NCBI RefSeq assembly: GCF_000143415.4
Contig: NW_003314263.1
Span: forward strand, 2,420,041 to 2,484,040
Length of the DNA stretch: 64,000 nucleotides
Reading direction: 5' to 3'
Source: Selaginella moellendorffii
Taxonomy: Eukaryota; Plantae; Lycopodiophyta
The translations under genes were made by a program, and so were the position numbers. The notes below the pieces were generated by a model. That model was given only the letters and a program-made list of their open reading frames with translations. It was not told the DNA's origin and made no database searches. This document shows, piece by piece, positions 13,076 to 60,348 of this stretch. How positions within the stretch are numbered: position 1 is the first letter of the stretch; each line of letters starts with the position of its first letter.

Positions 13076-16000
13076 CTAGGGCCCGTATATCTTGAGGTCC
13101 GGCCGCTCCACAAGCCATGGTGGAACTTTCGTACCTTTTTGGCACCATAGGACTTTGAGCCTGGGAAATAAGCCAAGGCCGTGATTGTCTGAACTCAATT
13201 GGGGCCACACCATATCATCATAAAGCACAAGTTTCTCCAATCCTGGAAGGGATGCAACGGATGATGGAATATTTTCGATACGACTCAAGGCTACATGTCT
13301 TTCATCTGGTCTGTTGGCTCAAAGAAATCATTGGGGAGCTCCTTCCGCAAAGATAATGCGAACCGTTTCACCTTCAGCTGTGATCTCTCGGTTGGCATCA
13401 AGAGTCTCCTCATGTAACCTTCTACTCTCAGTTCATCAAGGTCTTTGGGGAGTTGTGTCACAAAGAGAGGCAAATGCTCCCATGTATTATCAGGAGCCAC
13501 ATGGAATGTTAAGGTCTTCAGGTTTGGAAGAAATGCTGCCAAATCATCCTTGAACTCTGACTGTGCAATGTGTACATTTCGAAGCTCCAGACATTCAAGG
13601 CATGGGAACGATCCATCCAGACTGAAGAACTGGATACCACTGCAGTCTAGGCGAAGTAGTTGTAGCCGTTGAAAGCCCTTTAACCAAGACAGGTCTTTCA
13701 TTGTCTCATTGTTTGTGATCCATAAAAATTTTAGCTGTGGCCATTCAAGGTTTTCGGCATTGTTTTCACCGTCTTGTACCCCGTTGATTGAAAAGTGCTG
13801 AAGCTGGTTGGAATTCTTAAACATTCGCTTCCAGTCAAGTTTGATAGTTGATTCCACCCTAATGTTACATCGTCTTAGATTGACAAGTTGCCACAGGCCG
13901 GTGAAATCACCTAAGTCCATGCTCTTTGCACGCAACACCAATGTCTCAATGTCCACTAGTGCACCAAGGCTGTGAGGTATTTTTATTGTTGCATTGTGGA
14001 GGTCTAACTTTAAATATCTTAGCTTGTGTAGGCTTAAAATTCCACTCAAATCCACAGCTAACTCCTTACAGGATTCAAGCTCCAGATGTTCAAGGCATGG
14101 GAACAATCCATCCAGACTGAAGAACTGGATACCACTGCAGTCTAGGTGAAGTTCTCGTAGCCATTGAAAGCCCTTTAGCCAAGACAGGTCTTTCATTGTC
14201 TCATTGTTTGTGATGGATAAAACTTGTAGCTGCAGCCATTCGAGGCTTTCGGCATTGTTTTCACCGTCTTGTACCCTGTCAATGGTAAAGTCCTCAAGCT
14301 GTTTGGAATTCTTAAACATTCGCTTCCAGTCAAGTTTAATAGTCGATTCCACCGTAATGTCACATCGTCTTAGATTGACGAGTTGCCACGGGCCGGTGAA
14401 ATCACCAAAGTCCATGCTCTTTGCACGCAACACCAGTGTCTCAATGCCCACTAGTGCACCAAGGCTGTGAGGTATTTTTATTGTTGCATCATGGAGGTCT
14501 AACTTTAAATGTCTTAGCTTGTGTAGGCTTGAAATTCCACTCAAATCCACAGCTAACTCCTCATAGGAATGAAGCTCCAGCTCTTCCAAGTTAAATAATT
14601 GGGGCAGTAATGCAAAGTTGAATTTTGAGATCATATTGCATTTAAAAACCTTCAGTGATGTCAAGCTGAAGAGCGCATCTGGCAATTGAGGCCAACCTAA
14701 ATATCGAAGGTCAAGCACTTGAAGGTTTCTCAGCTTGGATATGCTCTCTGGAATAAAACGGACCAAATTATAGCTTCCATTCAAGCTCAATACCTTGACA
14801 TTTTGGATGTGATCTATAATAAGACTGACATCCACACCAGAAATTCCATGGCATCCATCGAGAAGCAAGACATCTCGCACATGAATGTCAGACAAAAGGC
14901 TGCTTGTAACCTTCTTTCCAATGAATGAAACTTTAGAAAAGGTTGGAGAAATCCCAGGTGGACAATCATAGCCAAACAGGCATCCCTTCTCGTGCTCTTC
15001 CTGGGGTGGGTACTTCCCTTTCAAGATTCTTATGCACAGCTTGCGTACCATATCGTGCACAGTTACATACTTATACCATCGATCATCAGTTGTCTTCACT
15101 AGGCATCTTCGTTCCAGTTCACTAACAATCTGCAGAGGCGAGAGTTCTGACCCAACCGCTATCCAACATTTTCTCAGATCATCAAACTGGATTCGCTCAT
15201 CTTCTGGAAACGCAGCCACATAGAGAAAGCACTCTTGCAGCTTTTCATCCTTATTAAAGTGTCCCAGCTCGTCATAGCTAAACTTCAAGCGCTGGAACAT
15301 CCGCTTCTCAATGTCCCCGTCATTCAACAAATGCATCTTCTGATAGCGTTCTTCCCACACCTGCGTCCCTTCATTCCTGTGGACAGCCATGGCACTGCCA
15401 ATCACTTCAAGAAACTTCCAAAACATCTGCTCAAGAAACTTCCAAAACATCATTTTGCTCTCGTCCTCTGATAGCTCATGCACAGGAAGTGCCTTTGCAC
15501 CCAGCATGCTCAAAATGCCTTTCTTTCTGGTTGTTACCAGCACCCGGCTGTAAGAGGACGGCCCTGCTATAAAATCCAGTCCCTTGGCCTGGCTCATTTC
15601 CCACACATCATCCAGTATCAGCAAGACACGAATTCCACGAGCAACATTTTGTGCCAAGTGCTGCACATGCTCAAGGGTGCCTGCATTTTGGGCCCTCTCT
15701 TTCATGCCGCCCCATTCAAGAGCGTCGAGCAGCTGGGCCCTGAGATCCTCCTCCGATGCATCTTTCTTGACAGTGATCCATACAATGTTGTCATGGAAAT
15801 GCTGCCGGACCCTCTGGTCATTGTTCACCCAGCTTGCAAGGGTGGTCTTGCCACACCCTCCCATTCCCAGGAGTCCAAACCATTTCCCCGGGGCTTGTGG
15901 ATCCAGGAGGGCATTCACCACCTCATCCACCTGCTCCCCATGGCGGCCAAACATGTCGTTGGCCTCGGGAATACCACGCCGTACATACTTTACGAGACCT

Positions 16001-16825
16001 CTGTCTTGTGGACAACTCCGTACGGAAAAGCTGGTGCTCGGCTGTATCACCTTCAACTCTTCTCGCTGGTACCTTTCAATGTGCGGGAGGAGATCGTCCT
16101 CGCAAGTGCGTACCAGCTCCAAAATCGCGCCAGATCGCTTCTCCCTGCGCGACAGATCCATCTTTTAGCTTCATTGCTTCAAACATGAATTCGAATAAGC
16201 CTTACTGTGATCCAAGCAGCGCTTGCGCCTTTTTAGTCCATTCAGTCAGTTCAGTCAGCCACGCCTCAGCCTCACCAGAGTAGCGGAAATCTGGATTCCT
16301 GTGCTTGGGAGCATTAAACTTGTCAAGCGTGGCCTGGATTCTGGATGCCCTCTTCTTTAGCTCCTCAATGTGGACATTCAGCTCATGCTCGTGACCTTGG
16401 ATCTGCGACAGGAGATCGTCGTAGGCACTTAAGGACTTCGCGATGTCGTTACTCCGCTTGTACCTATAGGAAGTGGAGAAGTTCAACCAGCTGCCTGCCA
16501 TTTCTACACACACACACACACAAAAGATAAAATGCTACTGTACCCACCGCTTTATGGGGCTCCAGATCCTGTTGTCGCGTGATCCCAAGAGTGCTTGTGC
16601 CTTGGCGTTCCATTTCCTGACACGCTCCAAGCATTTCTCGGCCGCTTGAGAGAACGTGAAGCCAGGATTCCGCTGCTTGTGAACACTGAAAGCGTCGATC
16701 TTGTCCTGGATGTGGGGCGCCTTGTTCTCCAGCGTGTCAATGTTGGCATTGCAGTCCCATATCTTCTTAGCAGGGCCCAGAGCCAAGCCACACAAGGCGC
16801 TTGCCAAGGAGCCCACAACCTCCAT
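13076..16825 (-). pseudogene. NLR copy 1 (tandem-CC NB-ARC-LRR); exons 16825-16548, 16463-16206, 16144-13291; GLPL motif deleted; 7-nt frameshift near 13295 removes the C-terminus
   Basis: P-loop GMGGCGKTT, kinase-2 LLILDDVW, RNBS-B SRVLVTTR, RNBS-D CFLYVAAFPED, VHD (MHD-equivalent), LRRs; the C-terminus continues out of frame at 13288-13076. Confidence 0.88.
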
Positions 16826-38765: not shown

Positions 38766-41700
38766 TCAAGAACCCAATCGATGTCCACTGAAGGAGCAAG
38801 GTTTGAAAGTGTCGATGTGGAGATCCGGCCGTTCCACAAGCCAAGGTGGAACTTTCGTACCTTTTGGGCACCATAGGGATTCGAGCCTTGGAAATAAGCC
38901 AAGGCCGTGATTGTCTGAACTCAATTGGGGCCACACTACATCATCATGACCAAAGAGCACAAGTTCCTCCAATCCTGGAAGGGATGCAATGGATGATGGA
39001 ATATTTTCGTTCCTATCCAAGGTTACTTTTGTTAGAGCAGTCATCTGGTCTGTTGGCTCAAAGAAATCATTGGGGGAGCTGCTTAATAATAGCCTCCCTC
39101 GCGAATAATTCGACCTGTTTCACCTTCAGCTGTGATCTTTCGGTTGGCATCAAGAGTCTCCTCATGTAACCTTCTACTCTCAGTTCATCAAGGTCTTTGG
39201 GGAGTTGTGTCACAAAGAGAGGCAAATGCTCCCATGTATTATCAGGAGCCAGATAGAATCTTAACCTCTTCAGGTTTGGAAGACTTGCTGCCAAATCGTC
39301 CTTGAACTCGGACTGTGCAATGTGTAGATTTTGAAGGCCCAGAACTTCAAGGCATGGGAACAATCCATCCAGACTGAAGAACTGGATGCCACTGCAGTCT
39401 ATGTGAAGTACTTGTAGCCGTTGAAAGCCCTTTAGCCAAGACAGGTCTTTCATTGTCCCATTGTTTTCACCGTCTTGTACCCCGTCAATCGAAAAGTGCT
39501 GAAGCTGTTTGGAATTCTTAAACATTCGCTTCAAGTCAAGTTTGATAGTCGATTGCACGCTAATGTCACATAGTCTTAGATTGACAAGTTGCCACGGGCC
39601 GGTGAAATCACCAAAGTCCATGCTCTTTGCACACAACACCAGTGTCTCAATGTCCTCTAGTGCACCAAGGCTGTGCGGTATTTTTATTGTTGCATCGTGG
39701 AGGTGTAGGTCTAAATGTCTTAGCTTGTGTAGGCTTGAAATTCCACTCAGATCCACAGCTAACTCATTGGAAAGAAGCTCCACACGTTCAAGGCATGGGA
39801 ACGATCCATCCAGACTGAAGAACTGGATACCACTGTAGTCTAGGTGAAGTTCTCGTAGCCGTTGAAAGCCCTTTAGCCAAGACAGGTCTTTCATTGTCTC
39901 ATTGTTTGTGATCCTTAAAAATTGTAGCTGTGGCCATTCGAGGCTATCGGCATTGTTTTCACCGTCTTGTACCCTGTCAATGGTAAAGTCCTCAAGCTGT
40001 TTCGAATTCTTAAACATTCGCTTCCAGTCAAGTTTAATAGTCGATTCCACCGTAATGTTACATCGTCTTAGATTGACAAGTTGCCACAGGCCGGTGAAAT
40101 CGGCAAAGTCCATGCTCTTTGCCCGCAACTCCAGTGTCTCAATGTCCTCTAGTGCACCAAGGCTTTGAGGTATTTTTATTGTTGCATTGTGGAGGTTTAC
40201 CTTTAAATGTCTTAGCTTGTGTAGGCCACTCAAATCCACAGCTAACTCCTTATAGGAATGAAGGTCCAGCTCTTCCAAGTTGAATAATTGGGGCAGTAAT
40301 GCAAAGTTGAATTTTGTGATGTCATTGTATTTCAAAACCTTCAGTGATGTCAAGCTGAAGAGCCCATCTGGCAATTGAGGCACACCTGAATCTCGAAGGT
40401 CAAGCACTTGAAGGTTTCTCAGCTTGGATATGCTCTCTGGAATAAAACGGACCCAATTTCTATACAAGCTCAATACCTTGACATTTTGGATGTGATCTAT
40501 AATAAGACTGACATCCACTCTAGAATGACATCCATCGAGAAGCAAGACATCTCGCACATGAATGTCAGACAAAAGGCTCCTTGTAACATTCTTTTGAATG
40601 AATGAAACTTTAGAAAATGTTGGAGAAATCCCAGGTGGACAATCATAGCCAAACAGACATCCCTTCTCGTGCTCTTCCTGGGGTGGGTACTTCCCTTTCA
40701 AGATTCTTATGCACAGCTTGCGTACCATATCGTGCACAGTTACATACTTTTCCCGAAGTATACTAGTTGTCTTCACTAGGCATCTTCGTTCCAGTTCACT
40801 AACAATCTGCAGAGGCGAGAGTTCTGACCCAACCGCTATCCAACATTTTCTCAGATCATCAAACTCGATTCGCCGATCTTCTGGAAACGCAGCCACATAG
40901 AGAAAGCACTCTTGCAGCTTTTCATCCTTATTAAAGCGTCCCAGCTCGTCATAGCTAAACTTCAAGCGCTGGAACATCCGCTTCTCAATGTCCCCGTCAT
41001 TCAACAAATGCATCTTCTGATAGCGTTCTTTCCACACCTGTGGCCCCTCATTCCTGTAGACAGCCATGGCACTGCCAATCACTTCAAGAGCTAAAGGGAG
41101 CCCCTCACATTTGCTAGCTATTCTCTCGGCAACTTTCACAATGTCCGGATCACTAGGTAGTGAATCATAAAAGGCAAACTTCCAAAACATCTTTTTGCTC
41201 TCGGCCTCTGATAGCTCATGCACAGGAAATGCCTTTGCACCCAGCATGCTCAAAATGCCTTCCTTTCTGGTTGTTACCAGCACCCGGCTGTAAGAGGACG
41301 GCCCTGCTATAAAATCCAGTCCCTTGGCCCAGCTCATGTCCCACACATCATCCAGTATCAGCAAGACACAAATTCCACGAGCAACATTTTGTGCCAAGTG
41401 CTGCACATGCTCAAGGGTGCCTGCATTTTGGGCCCTCTCTTTCATGCCGCCCCATTCAAGAGTGTTGAGGAGCTGGGCCCTGAGATCGTCCTCCGATGCA
41501 TCTTTCTTGACAGTGATCCACACAATGTTGTCATGGAAATGCTGCCGGACCCTCTCGTCATTGTGCACGAAGCTTGCAAGGGTGGTCTTGCCACACCCTC
41601 CCATTCCCAGGAGTCCAAACCATTTCCCCGGGGCTTGTGGATCCAGGAGGGCATTCACCACCTCATCCAGCTGCTCCCCATGGCGGCCAAACATGTCGCT

Positions 41701-42245
41701 GGGCTCGGGACCACCACGCCGTACATAGTTTACGAGACCTCTGTCTTGTGGACAACTCCGTACGGAAAAGCTGGTGCTCGGCTGTATCACTCTCAACTCT
41801 TCTCGCTCGTACCTTTCAATCTGCGGGAGGAGATCGTCCTCGCAAGTGCGTACCAGCTCCGAAATCGCGCCAGATCGCTTCTCCCTGCGCGACAGATCCA
41901 TCTTTTAGCTCCATTGCTTCAAACATGAATTCGAATAAGCCTTACTGTGATCCAAGCAGCGCTTGCGCCTTCTTAGTCCATTCAGTCAGTTCAGTCAGCC
42001 ACGCCTCAGCCTCACCAGAGTAGCGGAAGTCTGGATTCCTGTGCTTGGGAGCATTAAACTTGTCAAGCGTGGCCTGGATTCTGGATGCCCTCTTCTTTAG
42101 CTCCTCAACGTGGACATTCAGCTCATGCTCGTGACCTTGGATCTGCGACAGGAGATCGTCATAGGCACTTAAGGACTTCGCGATCTCGTCACTCCGCTTG
42201 TACCTATAGGAAGTGGAGAAGTTCAACCAGCTGCCTGCTATTTCT

Positions 42246-42282
<37 letters not shown>

Positions 42283-42581
42283 ATAAAATGCTACTGTACC
42301 GACCGCTTTATGGGGCTCCAGATCCTGTTGTCGCGTGATCCCAAGAGTGCTTGTGCCTTGGTGTTCCATTCCCTGACACGCTCCAAGCATTCCTCGGCCG
42401 CTTCAGAGAACGTGAAGCCAGAATTCTGCTGCTTGTGATCGCTGAAAGCGTTGATCTTGGCCTGGATGTGGTGCGCCTTGTTCTCCAGCGTGTCAATGTT
42501 GGCATTGCAGTCCCATATCTTCTTAGCAGGGCCCAGAGCCAAGCCACACAAGGCGCCTGCCAAGGAGCCCACAACCTCCAT
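38766..42581 (-). CDS. NLR copy 2; exons 42581-42304, 42203-41946, 41884-39067; single-base insertion in the run at 39072-39076 truncates the C-terminus
   Basis: All NB-ARC motifs present, including CEGLPLAL; G5 here versus G4 in the other copies; C-terminus continues in frame 39044-38766. Confidence 0.85.
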
Positions 42582-45712: not shown

Positions 45713-47769
45713 ATGACGTGGAATCCGCCACAAGTTCCTCCCAGCTTGTCCGCCTCGACTGCCACTACTCAGGCCGAGGATGAACTGGGCGTGGATGTGT
45801 CGTCTCCCAGCGGCGATTTGCTACTCCATATTCTCAACAGCGGTGGGGGCGACGAGCAGCTGAGGAGCAGTAGCAGCTACAGGACCCAGCAGTCGCAGCT
45901 CACGGTCCCTGCCACAGCTTTGCTCCTTCTGGAGCACCTGGAGGAGGAGGAGAAGGTCCTCCTCCACGACCACTCTACGTCCCAGCAATAAGATTTGGTG
46001 GGTGGTCACCTCACTTCCAGGAGCACCAAGACCCACTTTTCCCTTCGGATCCATTCTTGACTCCGTCGGACCACTGATTTCTACGCTCGTTTGCTCCTCT
46101 TCCAGTCGAGAGACCGTTCCATCCGCCAGTGCCGTATCCTTTTCCAAATGCTCCGACTTTCCAGCCTGCTGATAATGTGGTTCATCCGCCGCATTCCTCT
46201 GGGGAGCTTAAACCTCGTCCTGGCCTTCACTTCGGGTCTCCGGTGTTTGGACCCAGCGCAGCAGAGACCTCGGACTCCAAACGCGCCCCAGAGCAGCCGA
46301 GGAGATCGGTTACACCTGCGAAGGATGACAAGCAACAATTCCACGGCAATGGTTCCGAGCTCCTTCAGTTGTTACAGGGTGGTCCTGGTCGTGTGAAGCC
46401 CAGCCTCCACAAAGGTGGATGCTACACAGGACAGTGGGGATTCTGGAGAGCCATCACAGAAAGGAAGTCCATCTGCTGTTCACGGCCCCATAGGACCGCC
46501 GAGGCGTCATGTCGTTTCTCCTCCGCAGAGTCCAAATGACCTCCTTGGACGTTTGTGGGCTGCTCTTCCGTCGTCAAGCCACACTTTGTTTGACGGAGAA
46601 AGCGAACGCAAGACGTCAGCCCGGAGCTTTGGCGTTGAAGCGAACGAGATGTCCCGGGAAGTCGATGGAGGTGGAGCTGCTGGTTTCGCACTTTTGAAGC
46701 GAAGGGGATCGGAGCCTGCCGCCTCGCACTACCTTTAAACGGCTACGACTATAACGACTCTAAGAAAATGATAAGCCGAGGACAAACTCGGCATCCGGAC
46801 GACTACAGGACTATCGTGGGAGATACGTAAATGGAGAGGCCGAATTTGAGGCCGGAGGCGATGACTTTAGAGGTGCGGGAAGGCGTCGAGGTACCGGTCG
46901 TGCAGACGCCAGACGCGGTGGTCGGGGTGCTGTTGGCCAGTGGATTGCGGTAAATGAGAGGCATAAAGATGCTGAGCCAAGTGACATCACCTCCTGCGAT
47001 ATCTCTGATGGAAGGGACGAGTCGCTTAAATCTTCAAACGGGACTTAGTCGAATGCTAGGAGAAAACATCAACAGGAATGGAGGATAAAACAGGCCGACT
47101 CAAAGGCAGCATTTCCAGCGGAGAAAAAACCGGACTACAAGGTTGCGAAGGCACGGTCTTTGGCATCTCAACTTGAACGTCCAGGCTTGCCATCGGGAAG
47201 TACGCAGAACTCTTCCGTTGGTGCGGCTTTTGAGGAGTCCAAACAGAGGCTCCATAATCTAGATGCTTTGGAAGGAGAAGGCGTGACGACCTCTCTAGAT
47301 CTCGAGGAGCTACAAATTGACGGTCACCGTCGTCAGGGTAAAGCTCCACAGTTTTACAAGGTTTGTGCTTGCTTTTTCTCTTTCTTTATTTTCATGTGTT
47401 TGTATCTCTGGTTACAGCCGAAGGAGAACCGTTTCAGGGAGTCCAGACGCGTCATTCCCATGCACAGACGTGATCTTCTTTACCGACTGGATCTGCAGAA
47501 TTTCACTTGTGAGCTTTTCTGCCTCTACGACGAGCTTATACCAACCGGAGGTCCGGAGAAGGAAGTACTTCTCGAAGCTTGAGTCCCTTTTCGAGAGGGA
47601 GATCCCGGGAACACGGCTCTTTCTTTTCGGATCTTGTGTTAATGCGTTTGGAGTTTGTAACAGTGACATCGATGTTTGCCTCTCCGTTGATGAGGAAGAA
47701 CCAAACAAGATCGAGCTTGTTGTTCAAATGGCAACTATCCTCGAGTCAGATGCCATGTTAAACGTACAG
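45713..47769 (+). pseudogene. URT1: URT1-like 5' part, copy 2 (most complete)
   Basis: ATG 45713; LESLFEREIPGTRLFLFGSCVNAFGVCNSDIDVCLSVDEEEPNKIELVVQMATILESDAMLNVQ; internal stops and frameshifts; 3' exons absent. Confidence 0.87.
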
Positions 47770-47825
47770 GAGGCATAGGACAACGTGACTCATGGTACCC
47801 GCTATAGTTTCTTATCCGAATATTT

Positions 47826-48180
47826 AACCATCCTCCGATCCAGAGAACTTTCCTTTCATTGTTCTTGGCAACAAGGTCGATGTTGACGGAGGGAACAGTA
47901 GAGTGGTGAGCTCTTTTGTTTGATCTCTCTCGCCTTACTTTAAAGCTTGTGTGTCCAGGTTTCCCACAAGAAAGCCAAGCCTGGTGTGCTTCCAAGGGAA
48001 ACATTCCATACTTTGAGGCGTCTGCCAAGGAAGACTACAATGTGGAGGCTGCGATTCAATGCATTGCCAAGAATGCCTTAACCGAGGAAGACTTGTAAGT
48101 TTTGCTTGTTTCTTCTTGTGATGTTTCAAGCTCACATTTAACTTCTGGCAGCAGCTATCTTCCAGACACGATGGACAATA
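47826..48180 (+). pseudogene. RABG3: RAB7/RABG3 3' fragment, copy 2
   Basis: [24 protein letters not shown]...[33 protein letters not shown]. Confidence 0.87.
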
Positions 48181-48382
48181 AAATACTCAAAACCACGAGA
48201 GTAAAGTAATATCCTGAGAATACGATTTGTAAGAAAAAAAGAAAATGTTTCTTCTCCTAACGCTGCTGACGCTGTGAAATCTCTGTTTTCGTTTTTTGAT
48301 GTTCTGCTTGTGATGCAAAATGGTGTAGCATTTGCGCAGATCTTCGAAAACCAATCGATGTCCACTGAAGGAGCAAGGTTTA

Positions 48383-51300
48383 TTAGGCCTCGAAGGTTAT
48401 ATGGACATCCGGCCGCTCCTCAAGCCATGGTGGAACTTTCGTACCGTTTGGGCAGCGTAGGACTTTGAGCCTGGGAAATAAGCCAAGGCCGTGATTGTCT
48501 GAACTCAATTGGGGCCACACTACATCATCATGCCCAGAGAGCTCAAGTTCCTCCAATCCTGGAAGGGATGCAATGGATGATGGAATATTTTCGATCCTAC
48601 CCAAGGTTACACCTCTTAGAGCAGTCATCTGGTCTGTTGGCTCAAAGAAATCATTGGGGAGCTGCTTAATAATAGTCTCCCTCGCGAATAATTCGACCTG
48701 TTTCACCTTCAGCTGTGATCTCTCAGTTGGCATCAAGAGTCTCCTCATGTAACCTTCTACATCCAGTTCATCAAGGTCTTTGGGGTGTTGTGTCACAAAG
48801 AGAGGCAAATGCTCCCATGTATTATCAGGAGCCAGCTTGAATGTTAAAAGCTGCAGGTTTGGAAGACTTGCTGCCAAATCGTCCTTGAACTCCGACTGTG
48901 CAATGTGTAGATTTTCAAGGCCCAGAACTTCAAGGCATGGGAACGATCCATCTAAACTGAAGAACTGGATACCACTGCAGTCTAGGTGAAGTTGTCGTAG
49001 CCGTTGAAAGCCCTTTAGCCAAGACAGGTCTTTCATTGTCTCATTGTTTGTGATGGTTAAAAATTGTAGCTGTGGCCATTCAAGGCTTTCGGCATTGTTT
49101 TCACCGTCTTGTACCCTGTCAATCGAAAAGTGCCGAAGCTGTTTGGAATTCTTAAACATTCGCTTCCAGTCAAGTTTGATAGTCGATTCCACCCTAATAT
49201 CACATCGTTTCAGATTGACAAGTTGCCATAGGCTGGTGAAATCGCCAAAGTCCATGCTCTTTGCCCACAACTCCAGTGTCTCAATGTCCTCTAGTGCACC
49301 AAGGCCGTGAGGTATTTTTATTGTTGCCTTGTGGAGGCCTAGCTCTAAATGTCTTAGCTTGTGTAGGCTTGAAATTCCACTCAAATCCACAGCTAACTCC
49401 TCAAAGGAATAAAGCTCCAGCTCTTCCAAGTTGAATAATTGGGGCACTAATCCAAAGTTGAGATTTCTGGTAGCCTTGCATTTCAAAACCTTCAGTGATG
49501 TCAAGCTGAAGAGCGCATCTGGTACAAGGCACATCTCTCGAAGGTCAAGCACTTGAAGGTTTCTCAGCTTGGATATGCTCTCTGGAATAAAACGGACCTG
49601 ATCAGAGCAGTGAAGCAAGCTCAATACCTTGACATTTTGGATGTGATCTATAATAAGACTGACATCCACACCAGAAATTTTATGACATCCATCGAGAAGC
49701 AAGACATCTCGCACATGAATGTCAGACAAAAGGCTGCTTGTAACCTTCTTTCCAATGAATGAAACTTTAGAAAATGTTGGAGAAATCCCAGGTGGACAAT
49801 CATAGCCAAACAGGCATCCCTTCTCGTGCTCTTCCTGGGGCGGGTACTTCCCTTTCAAGATTCTTATGCACAGCTTGCGTACCATATCGTGCACAGTTAC
49901 ATACTTAACCCATCGAAAATCAGTTGTCTTCACTAGGCATCTTCGTTCCAGTTCACTAACAATCTGCAGAGGCGAGAGTTCTGACCCAACCGCTATCCAA
50001 CATTTTCTCAGATCATCAAAGTTGATGTTCCAATCTTCTTGAAACGCAGCCACATAGAGAAAGCACTCTTGCAGCTTTTCATCCTTATTAAACCGTCCCA
50101 GCTCGTCATAGCTAAACTTCAAGCGCTGGAACATCCGCTTCTCAATGTCCCCGTCATTCAACAAATGCATCTTCTGATAGCGTTCTTCCCACACCTGTGG
50201 CCCCGCATTCCTGTAGACAGCCATGGCACTGCCAATCACTTCAAGAGCTAAAGGGAGCCCCTCACATTTGCTAGCTATTCTCTTGGCAACTTTCACAATG
50301 TCCGGATCACTAGGTAGTGAATCACGAAAGGCAAACTTCCAAAACATCTTTTCGCTCTCGGCCTTTGATAGCTTACACACACGAAATGTTTTTGCACCCA
50401 GCATGCTCAAAATGTCTTCCTTTCTGGTTGTTACCAGCACCCGGCTGTAAGAGGACGGCCCTGCTATAAAATCCAGTCCCTCGGCCCAGCTCATGTCCCA
50501 CACATCATCCAGTATCAGCAAGACACAAATTCCACGAGCAACATTTTGTGCCAAGGGCTGCACATGCTCAAGGGTGCCTGCATTTTGGGCCCTCTCTTTC
50601 ATGCCGCCCCATTCAAGAGCGTTGAGGAGCTGGGCCCTGAGATCATCCTCCGATGCATCTTTCTTGACAGTGATCCATACAATGTTGTCATGGAAATGCT
50701 GCCGGACCCTCTGGTCATTGTTCACGAATCTTGCAAGGGTGGTCTTGCCACACCCTCCCATTCCCAGGAGTCCAAACCATTTCCCCGGGGCTTGTGGATC
50801 CAGGAGGGCATTCACCACCTCATCCAGCTGCTCCCCATGGCGGCCAAACATGTCGTTGGCCTCGGGAACACCACGCCGTACATAGTTTACGAGACCTCTG
50901 TCTTGTGGACAACTCCGTACGGAAAAGCTGGTGCTCGGCTGTATCACTCTCAACTCTTCTCGCTCGTACCTTTCAATGTGCGGGAGGAGATCGCCCTCGC
51001 AAGTGCGTATCAGCTCCGAAATCGCGCCAGATCGCTTCTCCCTGCGCGAAAGATCCATCTTTTAGCTTCATTGCTTCAAACATGAATTCGAATAAGCCTT
51101 ACTGTGATCCAAGCAGCGCTTGCGCCTTCTCAGTCCATTCAGTCAGTTCAGTCAGCCACGCCTCAGCCTCACCAGAGTAGCGGAAATCTGGATTCCTGTC
51201 CTTGGGAGCATTAAACTTGTCAAGCGTGGCCTGGATTCTGGATGCCCTCTTCTTTAGCTCCTCAATGTGGACATTCAGCTCATGCTCGTGACCTTGGATC

Positions 51301-51722
51301 TGCGACAGGAGATCGTCGTAGGCACTTAAGGACTTCGCGATCTCGTTACTCCGCTTGTACCTATAGGAAGTGGAGAAGTTCAACCAGCTGCCTGCCATTT
51401 GTACACACACACACACACAAAAGATAAAATGCTACTGTACCGACCGCTTTATGGGGCTCCAGATCCTGTTGTGGCGTGATCCCAAGAGTGCTTGTGCCGT
51501 GGTGTTCCATTTCCTGACACGCTCCAAGCATTCCTCGGCCGCTTGAGAGAACGTGAAGCCAGAATTCTGCTGCTTGTGATCACTGAAAGCGTTGATCTTG
51601 GCCTGGATGTTGGGCGCCTGGTTCTCCAGCGTTTCAATGTTGGCATTGCAGTCCCATATCTTCTTAGCAGGGGCCAGAGCCAAGCCACACAAGACGCTTG
51701 TCAAGGAGCCCACAACCTCCAT
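48383..51722 (-). CDS. NLR copy 3, intact tandem-CC NB-ARC-LRR protein (predicted 1064 aa); exons 51722-51445, 51360-51103, 51041-48383
   Basis: Two phase-2 GT-AG introns (84 and 61 nt) join the three ORFs in frame (3195 nt); P-loop, kinase-2, GLPL, RNBS-D, VHD and LRRs all intact. Confidence 0.92.
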
Positions 51723-52374
51723 GGCTGTAGACCTACAAGTAAAGGTTGTCTCCCTCCCAGAAAGAAGCGCAATATTAACTCTTGACCTTGTAGATCGGAA
51801 TTCTTCACTTTTTTCACAGCTGTGGCTCACTCACTCTATGAGATTCACAGTGAGCACCGCAACGATCGCTACATCGCTCGCAAAAAACACCTCTATTTGT
51901 ACAAACAGACAAACGTGGAGCACGTAAAGTACTTGTGTCTTTGGCCAAAACCCTAAACATCGACACGCCCGAGAAGAACATCGTCTTTTCTCTTGTACGG
52001 CGTTGATCCAGGCGTACGGGAATAGAGGGCTCCTCTGCCGATCTTTGATGGGATCCGGGCGATCTTGTCACCGACGTCTTGAAAGATCTTAGATTCTATC
52101 CGCAATCGCCCAGTCAATGCGATCCTGGCAATGGGTGCTCCATATCATTCTATTCCCGCCCGGACGTGATCTCCAGGATTTGCGAAGAAGAAGGTCGTCG
52201 ATCAGATGCGCGATGCTGGCGCGCAATTGATTGGGGCTTCCCGCTACATTTTCCCGCGCTATCGTCTCTACTTCTCCATTCTAGGGTTCTTTCTTGGAGG
52301 CGACGTAGGTTTTCTATTGCCCGCGTGGTCGAGGAGACGGCGCTGGGGGGCGGCCTTGATCGGCGTTCTGGAGC

Positions 52375-56594: not shown

Positions 56595-59500
56595 CTAGGA
56601 CCCGTATATCTTGAGATCCGGCCGCTCCTCAAGCCATGGTGGAACTTTCGTACCTTTTTGGCAGCCTAGGACTTTGAGCCTGGGAAATAAGCCAAGGCCG
56701 TGATTGTCTGCATCATCATGATCAGAGAGCACAAGTTTCTCCAATCCTGGAAGGGATGCAATGGATGATGGAATATTTTCGATCCAATCCAAGGTTACAC
56801 CTCTTAGAGCAGTCATCTGGTCTGTTGGCCCAAAGAAATCATTGGGGAGCTGCCTCATACAGCCCTTCCGCAAAGATAATGTGAACCATTTCACCTTCAG
56901 CTGTGATCTCTCGGTTGGCATCAAGAGTCTCCTCATGTAACCTCCTACATGCAGCAAATCAAGGTCATTGGGGAGTTGTGTCACAAAGAGAGGCAAATGC
57001 TCCCATGTATTATCAGAAGCCAGATAGAATGTTAAACACTTCAGGTTTGGAAGACTTGCTGCCAAATCGTCCTTGAACTCGGACTGTGCAATCTGCAGAT
57101 TTCGAAGATCCAGAAGTTCGAGGCATGGGAACGATACATCCAGACTGAAGAACTGGATACCACTGCAGTCTAGGCAAAGTTCTCGTAGCCGTTGAAAGCC
57201 CTTTAGCCAAGACAGGTCTTTCATTGTCTCATTGTTTGTGATCGCTAAAACTTGTAGCTGCAGCCATTCGAGGCTTTCGGCATTGTTTTCACCGTCTTGT
57301 ACCCCGTCAATCGAAAAGTCCTGAAGCTGTTAAACATTCGCTTCCAGTCAAGTTTGATAGTCGATTCCACCCTAATGTCACATCGTCTTAGATTGACAAG
57401 TTGCCACAGGCCGGTGAAATCGGCAAAGTCCATGCTCTTTGCCCGCAACTCCAGTATCTCAATGTCCACTAGTGCACCAAGGCTGTGAGGTATTTTTATT
57501 TTTGCATTGTAGAGTTTTAGCTCTAAATGTCTTAGCTTGTGTAGGCTTGAAATTCCACTCAAATCCACAGCCACAGCTAACTCCTTATCGGAATGAAGCT
57601 CCAGATGTTCGATGCATGGGAACAATCCATCCAGACTGAAGAACTGGATACCACTGCAGTATAGGCAAAGTTTTCGTAACCGTTGAAAGCCCTTTAGCCA
57701 AGACAGGTCTTTCATTGTCTCATTGTTTGTGATCGCTAAAACTTGTAGCTGCAGCCATTCGAGGCTTTCGGCATTGTTTTCACCGTCTTGTACCCCGTCA
57801 ATAAAAAAGTCCTGAAGCTGTTTGGAGTTCTTAAACATTCGCTTCCAGTCAAGTTTGATAGTCGATTCCACCCTAATGTCACATCGTCTTAGATTGACAA
57901 GTTGCCACAGGCCGGTGAAATCGGCAAAGTCCATGCTCTTTGCCCGCAACTCCAGTATCTCAATGTCCACTAGTGCACCAAGGCTGTACGGTATTTTTAT
58001 TGTTGCAATGTAGAGTTCTAGCGGTAAATATCTTAGCTTGTGTAGGCTTGAAATTCCACTCAAATCCACAGCTAACTCCTGATTGGACTGAAGCTCCAGC
58101 TCTTCCAAGTTGAATAATTGGGGGAGTAATGCAAAGTTGAATTTTGTGATGTTATTGCATTTCAAAACCTTCAGTGATGTCAAGCTGAAGAGCGCATCTG
58201 GCAATTGAGGCACACCTGAATATCGAAGGTCAAGCACTTGAAGGTTTCTCAGCTTGGATATGCTCTCTGGAATAAAACGGACCAAATTATAGCATCCATT
58301 CAAGCTCAATACCTTGACATTTTGGATCTGATCTATACTAAGACTGACATCCACACCAGAACTTCCATCACATCCATCGAGAAGCAAGACATCTCGCACA
58401 TGAATGCCAGACAAAAGGCTGCTTGTAACCTTCTTTCCAATGAATGAAACTTTAGAAAATGTTGCAGAAATCCCAGGTGGACAATCATAGCCAAACAGGC
58501 ATCCCTTCTCGTGCTCTTCCTGGGGTGGGTACTTCCCTTTCAAGATTCTTATGCACAGCTTGCGTACCATATCGTGCACAGTTACATACTTATACCATCG
58601 ATCATCAGTTGTCTTCACTAGGCATCTTCGTTCCAGTTCACTAACAATCTGCAGAGGCGAGAGTTCTGACCCAACCGCTATCCAACATTTTCTCAGATCA
58701 TCAAACTGGATTCGCTCATCTTCTGGAAACGCAGCCACATAGAGAAAGCACTCTTGCAGCTTTTCATCCTTATTAAAGTGTCCCAGCTCGTCATAGCTAA
58801 ACTTCAAGCGCTGGAACATCCGCTTCTCAATGTCCCCGTCATTCAACAAATGCATCTTCTGATAGCGTTCTTCCCACACCTGCGTCCCTTCATTCCTGTG
58901 GACAGCCATGGCACTGCCAATCACTTCAAGAAACTTCCAAAACATCTGCTCAAGAAACTTCCAAAACATCTTTTCGCTCTCGGCCTTTGATAGCATACAC
59001 ACACGAAATGTTTTTGCACCCAGCATGCTCAAAATGTCTTCCTTTCTGGTTGTTACCAGCACCCGGCTGTAAGAGGACGACCCTGCCATAAAATCCAGTC
59101 TCTCGGCCCAGCTCATGTCCCACACATCATCCAGTATCAGCAAGACACAAATTCCACGAGCAACATTTTGTGCCAAGTGCTGCACATGCTCAAGGGTGCC
59201 TGCATTTTGGGCCCTCTCTTTCATGCCGCCCCATTCAAGAGCGTTGAACAGCTGGGCCCTGAGATCGTCCTCCGATGCATCTTTCTTGACAGTGATCCAT
59301 ACAATGTTGTCATGGAAATGCTGCCGGACCCTCTGGTCATTGTGCACGAAGCTTGCAAGGGTGGTCTTGCCACACCCTCCCATTCCCAGGAGTCCAAACC
59401 ATTTCCCCGGGGCTTGTGGATCCAGGAGGGCATTCACCACCTCATCCAGCTGCTCCCTATGGCGGCCAAACATGTCGCTGGGCTCGGTAACACCATGCCG

Positions 59501-60348
59501 TACATAGTTTACGAGACCTCTGTCTTGTGGACAACTCCGTACGGAAAAGCTGGTGCTCGGCTGTATCACTCTCAACTCTTCTCGCTCGTACCTTTCAATG
59601 TGCGGGAGGAGATCGTTCTCGCAAGTGCGTACCAGCTCCGAAATCGCGCCAGATCGCTTCTCCCTGCGCGACAGATCCATCTTTTAGCTCCATTGCTTCA
59701 AACATGAATTCGAATAAGCCTTACTGTGATCCAAGCAGCGCTTGCGCCTTCTTAGTCCATTCAGTCAGTTCAGTCAGCCACGCCTCAGCCTCACCAGAGT
59801 AGCGGAAATCTGGATTCCTGTGCTTGGGAGCATTAAACTTGTCAAGCGTGGCCTGGATTCTGGATGACCTCTTCTTTAGCTCCTCAATGTGGACATTCAG
59901 CTCATGCTCGTGACCCTGGATCTGCGACAGGAGATCGCCGTAGGCACTTAAGGACTTCGCGATCTCGTCACTCCGCTTGTACCTATAGGAAGTGGAGAAG
60001 TTCAACCAGCTGCCTGCCATTTCTACACACACACACACACACACAAAAGATAAAATGCTACTGTACCGACCGCTTTATGGGCCTCCAGATCCTGTTGTGG
60101 CGTGATCCCAAGAGTGCTTGTGCCTTGGCGTTCCATTTCCTGACACGCTCCAAGCATTCCTCGGCCGCTTGAGAGAACGTGAAGCCAGGATTCTGCTGCT
60201 TGTGATCACTGAAAGCGTTGATCTTGGCCTGGATGTTGGGCGCCTTGTTCTCCAGCTTTTCAATGTTGGCATTGCAGTCCCATATCTTCTTAGCAGGGCC
60301 CAGAGCCAAGCCACACAAGGCGCTTGCCAAGGAGCCCACAACCTCCAT
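56595..60348 (-). pseudogene. NLR copy 4; exons 60348-60071, 59982-59725, 59663 onward; GLPL deleted; 10-nt frameshift near 57330
   Basis: NB-ARC motifs as in copy 1; KRMF(KNSK)QLQ is collapsed; C-terminus lies in ORF 57224-56595. Confidence 0.88.

Follow-up and report, generated by a model that had tools for sequence, protein, structure and literature searches.

A Selaginella moellendorffii NLR receptor family with an internally duplicated N-terminal helical module

The DNA analyzed here is a window of 64,000 nt from Selaginella moellendorffii, and all coordinates are given as positions in this window. The focal gene lies on the minus strand, begins with an ATG at 51722 and is composed of three exons separated by two GT-AG introns of 84 and 61 nt. 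Exon 1 (51722-51445) is 278 nt long, exon 2 (51360-51103) is 258 nt long, and exon 3 (51041-48383) ends at the stop codon. When read in frame the three exons gave a product of 1064 amino acids with a single terminal stop, identical to the database protein P0002 (RefSeq XP_024545411.1). Similarity searches took the exons of the window individually, and analyses of the whole protein used P0002. Both introns are phase 2, with the codon split after its second base. Intron 1 (51361..51444, minus strand, GTCGGT..TATAG) interrupts an arginine codon (CG/G) and contains a (GT)n run as well as an in-frame ATG at 51398, while intron 2 (51042..51102, minus strand, GTAAGG..GCGCAG) interrupts a glutamine codon (CA/G). 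Exon 3 encodes an NB-ARC domain (50105..50830, minus strand; exon 3 residues 71-312) recognized by Pfam PF00931 with E = 1.1e-38 and 133 bits against a cut-off of 23.5, in which the P-loop GMGGCGKTT is present. An LRR region follows and extends to the stop codon (48383..49735, minus strand), matched by PF23598 LRR_14 over exon 3 residues 436-736 (E = 7.9e-19, 68 bits, cut-off 40). As judged by the NB-ARC domain with its P-loop and the C-terminal LRR, the predicted product is a plant NLR.

A first-pass annotation of this DNA had noted a plain ORF beginning at MDLSRR, which is present at 48383-51058, and had proposed that two further exons upstream are spliced in frame to the NB-ARC exon. The RefSeq protein follows the same exon model, and both junctions were recovered in RNA contigs assembled from four runs (X1, X2, X3 and X5) belonging to four independent studies. 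The 61-nt skip that corresponds to intron 2 (junction 51103/51041) was found in contigs of all four runs, and a 622-nt contig (X3 record 22) bridges this intron with 362 and 260 nt on either side. The 84-nt skip of intron 1 (junction 51445/51360) was found in three runs (X1, X3 and X5), where the shorter flank was only 27 nt and thus below the 31-nt threshold, and in run X2 loose contig ends at this intron read into the other exon. An alternative is that the protein truly begins at MDLSRR, the upstream exons being misannotated or part of a separate transcript. The longest plain ORF does begin there, the donor of intron 1 (GTCGGT) is weak, and contigs retaining intron 1 were present in all four runs. 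However, contigs with exon 2 spliced to exon 3 come from four studies and contigs with exon 1 spliced to exon 2 from three, the MDLSRR stretch itself sits partly inside intron 2, and all paralogues share the same exon structure with open frames. We therefore regard a start at MDLSRR as extremely improbable.

The region encoded upstream of the NB-ARC domain contains an internal repeat. Comparison of the exon 1 and exon 2 translations by BLASTP gave an ungapped match with 24 of 59 residues identical (41%, E = 2e-13), and hhalign comparison of profiles built for the two modules gave a probability of 99.6% and E = 6e-25 over 89 columns. By sequence, the two N-terminal modules are homologous, as the first-pass annotation had claimed. 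In the hhalign alignment residues 25-122 are paired with residues 121-213, with one 10-residue gap; module 2 is shorter than module 1 by these 10 residues, and the repeat covers helices a2 to a4 only. Helix a1, MEVVGSLTSVLCGLALAPAKKIWD, is encoded by exon 1 codons 1-24 (51651..51722, minus strand); it is hydrophobic, occurs once and lies outside the internal repeat. The mean Kyte-Doolittle hydropathy of residues 1-20 was 1.27 compared with -0.4 to -0.7 for the remaining helices, and as a1 precedes the start of the repeat at residue 25, the earlier observation that a hydrophobic first helix is confined to module 1 is borne out. Helices a2 and a3 of module 1, delimited by BLASTP against exon 2 and by predicted helices, occupy the rest of exon 1 (51445..51650, minus strand; codons 25-92 plus two bases of codon 93). 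Beyond intron 1, the first 28 codons of exon 2 encode helix a4, YKRSNEIAKSLSAYDDLLSQIQGHEHEL (51276..51360, minus strand; modelled helix 90-117), which aligns with the SSYKxGK helix of G10-type N-termini. Helices a2' and a3' of module 2, placed by hhalign and AlphaFold, are encoded by exon 2 codons 29-85 plus two bases of the split glutamine codon (51103..51275, minus strand). Finally, helix a4', EKRSGAISELIRTCEGDLLPHIERYEREEL, is encoded by the first 30 codons of exon 3 and is followed by a linker to the NB-ARC domain (50951..51041, minus strand; modelled helix 183-209); it aligns with a4 of module 1 and also with the a4 end of the single-module paralogue P0019. In each module the phase-2 intron stands directly before the motif xKRS in the exon model, which agrees with the first description of this locus.

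AlphaFold predicted helices at residues 3-52, 60-84 and 90-117, and then at 120-148, 156-177 and 183-209, a layout of three plus three helices with an N-terminal extension. Mean pLDDT was 71.7 for residues 1-250 and 80.4 for residues 1-122, with values of 80-92 for the module 2 helices at 120-148 and 156-177 and values below 50 for residues 1-13 of a1. The pTM of 0.49 limits how well module 2 can be positioned with respect to module 1 and the NB-ARC domain. Since the hydrophobic a1 lies outside the repeat, the architecture of the N-terminus is a1-a2-a3-a4-a2'-a3'-a4', a layout of seven helices and not of two complete four-helix bundles, and module 2, lacking the first helix, is not a complete coiled-coil (CC) domain. 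The expectation of a CC-CC arrangement with two four-helix bundles consequently did not hold. A pair of complete CC domains, with each module folding as a separate four-helix bundle capable of signalling, would accord with the weak Rx_N match obtained from each exon and with the predicted tandem CC-CC-NLRs of Marchantia, in one of which the internal CC gave cell death (PMC11218826). Against this, the repeat begins at module 1 residue 25 and a1 has no counterpart ahead of module 2, which is 10 residues shorter with three predicted helices; the module 2 profile matched G10-type N-termini over one helix at most, and a structure search with residues 119-212 alone returned only generic three-helix bundles. 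This alternative is accordingly very unlikely.

The same N-terminal structure was present in all four copies in the window, each with an exon 1 of 278 nt, an exon 2 of 258 nt and an intron 2 of 61 nt, whereas intron 1 measured 84, 84, 88 or 100 nt; these measurements match the intron lengths first reported for the four copies (84-100 nt and 61 nt). The three other copies are also on the minus strand. Paralogue A (13291..16825) has exons at 16825-16548, 16463-16206 and 16144-13291, and paralogue B (39067..42581), in which intron 1 is 100 nt, has exons at 42581-42304, 42203-41946 and 41884-39067. In paralogue D (57245..60348), with an intron 1 of 88 nt, exons 1 and 2 lie at 60348-60071 and 59982-59725 and exon 3 runs from 59663; its ORF stops early at 57245, and the LRR resumes in a separate ORF at 56595-57224. 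Both phase-2 introns are also kept in a divergent subfamily represented by P0014 (62% identical) and in further paralogues.

With respect to the origin of the repeat, the most informative relatives are P0019 (XP_024523009.1) and P0124, single-module proteins of the same genome which share the N-terminal domain type and have an NB-ARC-LRR body 44% identical to that of the double-module proteins. They carry one set of a2-a4 helices instead of two and lack a stretch of some 87 residues together with the second intron. The module 1 profile search matched P0019 in one stretch (E = 3.5e-54), and its one phase-2 intron splits the same arginine codon. A small NB-ARC tree (18 sequences, midpoint root) placed the 11 double-module proteins in one clade (support 93/95) nested inside P0019/P0124 and P0023. 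The shared intron position and the nesting of the clade point to a single tandem duplication in which the copied segment included the intron, and the proposal of an old duplication of this kind is thereby backed. The reverse explanation, in which the single module of P0019 is a secondary loss through recombination between the repeats, is less parsimonious. In the ancestor of the clade, a single tandem duplication would have doubled some 340 bp of the gene, a stretch that begins with a2, includes the phase-2 intron and closes with a4. The middle exon of 258 nt would then join the old a4 to the new a2'-a3', and the second copy would retain the original junction between a4 and the NB-ARC domain. 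No residual similarity was detected between intron 1 and intron 2 (z = 1.1). Taken jointly, the N-terminal anatomy (the exons and the a2-a4 repeat) and its origin by tandem duplication are very probably as described.

The relationship of module 1 to known NLR coiled coils was examined by profile, structural and language-model comparison. Pfam Rx_N remained below its cut-off of 27.7 bits on both modules (13.6 and 15.6 bits; E = 0.077 and 13.6 bits on exon 1), and Rx_N clusters were the nearest in a language-model search (score 0.90). Alignment of the module 1 profile by hhalign gave E = 1.6e-5 (probability 79%, 107 columns) with G10-type N-termini, E = 2.7e-5 with Cbl-N/MAEPL-type N-termini over 44 columns in which a1-a2 are aligned, and E = 0.014 with EDVID-type N-termini; known CC classes match one another at the same level as the module 1 matches (E = 2e-5 to 4e-5). 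Among 48,161 chains searched by structure, the ZAR1 resistosome (6j5t_G) ranked first (Z = 10.2 and 9.9, 105-106 residues) and the wheat G10 resistosome (9h2l_A) third (Z = 9.7 and 9.0, rmsd 2.1-2.7), although values of 9-10 are not clear of unrelated helical bundles (Z = 8-9) and those below about 13 may reflect a common bundle arrangement. A Foldseek search of the PDB with the 250-residue model gave no match with E <= 0.001, with the tomato NRC3 resistosome at rank 35, and a profile search against the sequences of solved structures found no CC domain, only chance coiled-coil matches. In these comparisons module 1 resembles the coiled-coil domains of NLRs, of which it is a candidate member.

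With resistosome-forming CC-NLRs such as Arabidopsis ZAR1 (PDB 6J5T), the Selaginella receptors share the predicted order CC, NB-ARC, LRR and a hydrophobic first helix, and the alignment of module 1 to ZAR1, its top structural match, includes the extended first helix. They differ in that Rx_N-type CC profiles give no significant sequence match, an extra three-helix module stands between the CC and the NB-ARC domain, and the EDVID motif is absent. This absence had been claimed earlier, and a scan of residues 1-220 of P0002, P0014 and P0019 for the EDVID-like pattern [DE][DE][VILM][VILM][DE] indeed returned nothing. The lack of EDVID is shared with the G10-type receptors (RPS2, RPS5 and wheat WAI3; PDB 9H2L). 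Module 1 is also colinear with the G10 profile over its 107 columns, including the W-helix and the YKxS/G helix, and RPS2/RPS5-like proteins were among many best angiosperm matches to the Selaginella NB-ARC-LRR body. In contrast, G10 NLRs have a single CC, and the Cbl-N/MAEPL-type N-termini matched module 1 equally strongly, though over a shorter length. The Selaginella clade did not fall inside G10 in the 18-sequence midpoint-rooted tree, where two G10-like angiosperm NB-ARC domains grouped with the EDVID-type (98/92). Published surveys confine G10 to seed plants or angiosperms (PMC7756659, PMC12512272), and published trees place Selaginella outside G10 (PMC7756659). The resemblance to RPS2/RPS5 that the first-pass annotation had drawn is thus weak; it stands for the N-terminal profile and structural matches but not for the NB-ARC domain, which lies outside the G10 sequences sampled.

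That annotation had also presented the architecture as an undescribed class and as a candidate novel system. Chia et al. (2024) predicted tandem CC-CC-NLRs in Marchantia polymorpha (Mp3g09180 and Mp3g09210) and assayed each CC (PMC11218826), and NLRtracker surveys include a CCNL class (10.1101/2025.01.13.632774). The architecture class has therefore already been catalogued, and the Selaginella genes are a natural variant of a known receptor type. The likeness to these proteins is by architecture, in that more than one CC-type region precedes the NB-ARC domain. The Selaginella proteins differ in that their second region can be shown to be a copy of the first that lacks a1 and arose together with its intron, and in that the double module has become fixed in a clade comprising at least 11 expressed paralogues. 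No description of this Selaginella double-module case was found in the literature. Word searches with residues 1-215 and 1-250 matched S. moellendorffii only, as did an exhaustive HMMER search with the module 1 profile of 1.84 billion cluster representatives; in these libraries relatives more than 50% identical sit inside clusters, and other lycophyte genomes may be lacking. The sole other HMMER match was to a bacterial T9SS protein and was taken as spurious. Overall, the best explanation is that the clade represents lineage-specific S. moellendorffii CC-NB-ARC-LRR receptors with a duplicated module, to which we assign a probability of roughly 70%. Catalogues based on Pfam or NLRtracker score these genes as NB-ARC only or NB-ARC-LRR (PMC11126693). 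NLRtracker applied to the S. moellendorffii v1.0 annotation reports zero (CC)(NBARC)(LRR) proteins. As the CC of these genes is missed, lycophyte CC-NLRs are under-annotated.

Sequence variation was compared among seven recent paralogues. Nonsynonymous variable sites numbered 7 of 132 in a2'-a3' and 27 of 163 in a2-a3 (Fisher p = 0.003), so that the nonsynonymous variability of module 2 was about a third of that of module 1; this comparison involves few sites and could be distorted by gene conversion between tandem copies. Module 2 is less variable than module 1 among recent paralogues. Positive selection on module 1 was considered on the basis of a pairwise pN/pS of 4.7 among the four window copies, but the site-wise ratio in the seven paralogues was 1.37 and not significant. 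This claim was therefore dropped, and only the difference in nonsynonymous density is retained.

These data bear on what module 2 may do. The protein would work as a coiled-coil NLR, with the single hydrophobic a1 of module 1 as the membrane-acting element after oligomerization. We tentatively propose that module 2 is a conserved three-helix spacer or adaptor on the NB-ARC side, which would hold module 1 at a greater distance from the nucleotide-binding ring. For NLRs that lack EDVID this arrangement is sterically plausible by analogy with wheat WAI3, in the structure of which the CC points away from the LRR and is not folded back (10.1101/2025.08.26.672026). Module 2 might instead be a functionless passenger, tolerated and fixed by drift in a fast-evolving NLR cluster. 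Evolution of the whole gene is nearly neutral between recent copies (in the NB-ARC part the per-site ratio of nonsynonymous to synonymous changes is about 0.9), NLR clusters tolerate many rearrangements, and single-module relatives persist beside the double-module genes. Yet the reading frame is intact in every copy examined, frame and helix pattern persist across two subfamilies (at least 11 paralogues) with only 62% overall identity, neither module has decayed in the course of their divergence to 41% identity, and the reduced nonsynonymous variability of module 2 also speaks against a passenger, which we consider quite unlikely.

The same low variability, together with the high-confidence helices predicted for module 2, would suit an intramolecular regulator whose a1-less groove accommodates a1, either that of module 1 or that of an adjacent protomer, keeping the receptor off until activation or setting the geometry of the oligomer. 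The homology of module 2 covers precisely those helices, a2-a4, against which a1 is packed in four-helix CC bundles. In both AlphaFold models, however, a1 is undocked and runs on continuously from a2, with low confidence in that region, and regulation of this kind appears unlikely, if somewhat less so than a passenger. There is similarly only a small chance that module 2 acts as a regulatory pseudo-CC, which either captures the pore-forming a1 and thereby keeps the receptor off, or assembles into an additional ring, making the resistosome stalk longer and altering its stoichiometry. Exon 2 is phase-symmetric, so that a transcript lacking it would again encode a canonical single CC, and splicing could switch between the two forms. 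No exon-2-skipping joint was found among the RNA contigs of the four runs; because rare forms drop out of contigs, this result does not show that such a transcript is absent. If true, the pseudo-CC would represent a mode of CC-NLR control or shaping that is not known in flowering plants.

Work on resistosomes has so far been based on receptors with a single four-helix coiled coil. The Selaginella family offers a natural, expressed and conserved case in which an inserted a1-less CC copy separates the putative executioner helix from the nucleotide-binding ring. The family provides a natural test of how much spacing the connection between CC and NB-ARC tolerates, of whether a2-a4 can act without a1, and of how CC domains without EDVID are arranged. 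The host plant has very few NLRs, and the double-module family makes up a large share of this repertoire.

The studied gene lies on the minus strand and comprises three exons. Exon 1 (51722-51445, 278 nt) starts with an ATG at 51722, exon 2 covers 51103-51360 (258 nt), and the large exon 3 runs from 51041 to a stop at 48383. Both introns are GT..AG and phase 2: intron 1 (51361-51444, 84 nt) splits the Arg93 codon (CG/G) and intron 2 (61 nt, between exon 2 and the large exon) splits that of Gln179 (CA/G). Read in frame, the exons gave 1064 residues with a single terminal stop, identical letter for letter to P0002 (XP_024545411.1, 1064 aa). Top matches in a database search with the large exon were all Selaginella moellendorffii proteins, with P0002 at 100% identity over 100% of the query. 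The window's other three copies, paralogues A, B and D, show an identical exon/intron layout; intron 2 is 61 nt in every copy, and intron 1 is 84, 88 or 100 nt as the result of a (GT)n microsatellite (approximately 51400-51419 and the equivalent place in the other three). The first-pass annotation, which had proposed two upstream exons joined in frame through GT-AG introns in all four copies, was borne out by the exact match to P0002 for the studied gene and by the shared layout of the other copies. The start at MDLSRR indicated by its ORF track lies inside intron 2 and is therefore not the true start. In copy D (57245-60348) the large exon closes after 805 codons and the rest of the LRR is found in a separate 209-aa ORF (56595-57224), owing to an additional intron or to a frameshift; for this copy, RefSeq has a model (P0013) with a long, doubtful N-terminal extension.

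Comparison of the exon 1 and exon 2 translations by BLASTP produced a gapless alignment (24/59 identical, E = 2e-13), and hhalign of paralogue-built profiles aligned residues 25-122 with 121-213 (E = 6e-25, one 10-residue gap), in agreement with the two homologous modules noted earlier. Also as noted, only module 1 has a hydrophobic first helix: the first 24 residues are the sole strongly hydrophobic stretch and have no counterpart in the repeat. AlphaFold placed helices at 3-52, 60-84 and 90-117, then at 120-148, 156-177 and 183-209, with good confidence for module 2 and low confidence for residues 1-13; module 1 modelled alone gave the same helices (mean pLDDT 80.4). Two helical modules were thus predicted as expected, but the second has three helices rather than four, and the repeat lacks the first 24 residues, so these are not two complete four-helix bundles. 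The N-terminus consists of one CC-like domain (helices a1-a4) and, after it, a duplicate of the final three of these helices (a2'-a4').

The single-module paralogue P0019 is 44% identical, lacks a block of approximately 87 residues, and its single intron (63 nt, phase 2) interrupts the same arginine codon, while the divergent double-module P0014 subfamily (62% identical) has both phase-2 introns in the same places. These shared positions support the old exon-pair duplication suggested previously. In the NB-ARC tree, eleven double-module proteins formed one clade (93/95), nested inside single-module P0019/P0124 and the more distant single-module P0023. Most simply, this is explained by a single tandem duplication of the a2-a3-intron-a4 segment, an event that by itself produces a symmetric middle exon in which a4 is fused to a2'. 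The two copies are old: they share 41% of amino acids and 53% of third codon positions, and introns 1 and 2 retain no similarity to each other. The P0023 gene has a 53-nt phase-2 intron (gene positions 150-202) which, by a rough, weak alignment, lies some 9-10 codons upstream of the P0002/P0019 position, before RRIWLAIKR and not after it. This offset is reminiscent of the 10 residues by which modules 1 and 2 differ, and intron sliding or an indel could explain it.

Among seven recent paralogues, variable nonsynonymous sites numbered 27/163 in a2-a3 versus 7/132 in a2'-a3' (Fisher p = 0.003), with no significant excess over synonymous change in either part and a ratio near 0.9 for the NB-ARC part. 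Module 2 is thus more tightly conserved than module 1, with the counts small and gene conversion possible, and this speaks against a decaying remnant.

Pfam Rx_N matches were sub-threshold only, and a sequence search of solved structures returned nothing. The module 1 profile matched G10-type (RPS2/RPS5) angiosperm N-termini from end to end (E = 1.6e-5, probability 79%) and, over a1-a2, the Cbl-N/MAEPL-type N-termini of bryophytes (E = 2.7e-5), with no match to EDVID-type N-termini; known CC classes match one another at this same level. A structural search of 48,161 chains, independent of Foldseek, placed the ZAR1 resistosome at rank 1 and the wheat G10 octamer at rank 3 with both models, at Z scores of 9-10, near those of unrelated bundles, and in a language-model search Rx_N clusters were nearest. 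From these matches, together with its position ahead of the NB-ARC, the domain is best interpreted as a CC-type executioner. The G10 resemblance proposed from the sequence is weakly supported by the profile and structural matches, and in the NB-ARC tree the family is separate from the G10 sequences sampled; published trees also place Selaginella outside the G10 clade (PMC7756659, PMC12512272). Most likely the receptor functions as a CC-NLR whose membrane-acting helix is the a1 of module 1. Module 2 would most economically be read as a conserved spacer or adaptor adjoining the NB-ARC, in keeping with the extended placement of the CC that has been reported for EDVID-less NLRs (10.1101/2025.08.26.672026); it is also possible that module 2 is a regulatory pseudo-CC which takes up a1.

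Word-based and exhaustive profile searches found the module in S. moellendorffii only. Earlier surveys reported 2, 3 or 16 NBS genes in this species and no CC class (PMC11126693, PMC7756659), and in the v1.0 annotation NLRtracker classed ten genes as NB-ARC-only, three as NB-ARC-LRR and none as CC-NB-ARC-LRR. The architecture had not been recognised as a described one, but the class is already known, as predicted tandem CC-CC-NLRs of Marchantia were mentioned, and both CCs tested, by Chia et al. 2024 (PMC11218826), and the sweetpotato NLRome has a CCNL class for two-CC-domain NLRs (10.1101/2025.01.13.632774). No description of this particular duplication, which lacks a1, bears an intron and occurs in a lycophyte clade, was found in the literature searched. 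On a 2,034,879-bp S. moellendorffii contig, the 181-aa gene model P0125 shares 62% identity with the double-module N-terminus and lacks an NB-ARC; it could be a gene for a CC alone, or a 5' portion split off from an adjacent NLR model, for instance P0016. Within the window, short ORFs resembling exons of a Ras/Rab-type small GTPase (Pfam Ras, E = 3.5e-4) lie on the plus strand just downstream of the NLR (47500-48100), and the window start contains a fragment of an F-box/LRR gene (1404-2542).

Contigs from four runs, each belonging to a different study, were aligned to 48200-52000 (3,801 letters); labelling these runs as RNA is a guess, for which the presence of spliced forms argues. Junction 51103/51041, without the 61-nt intron 2, was joined in contigs of all four runs, one 622-nt contig bridging it with 362 and 260 letters on its two sides. 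Junction 51445/51360, without the 84-nt intron 1, was joined in three of the four, but with a shorter side of just 27 letters, below the 31-letter rule, and contigs retaining intron 1 (51332-51472, zero mismatches) occurred in all four; the fourth run had loose ends at both exon edges, reading into the partner exon. Some contigs carry mismatches and may derive from paralogues, so splicing is shown for the family and not strictly for this copy. The intron 1 donor is weak (GTCGGT), and the intron carries an ATG (51398-51396, minus strand) in frame with exon 2 (MAGSWLNFSTSYR-YKRS...), which is ATA in copy B and is exactly where RefSeq isoforms of paralogues P0001 and P0010 begin. Exon 2 is phase-symmetric (2-2), and no exon-2-skipping joint was seen in contigs of the four runs. 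Initiation at the intron 1 ATG would yield proteins without a1-a3 of module 1, and skipping of exon 2 would link the module 1 helices a2-a3 directly to a4', restoring a canonical single CC as in P0019.
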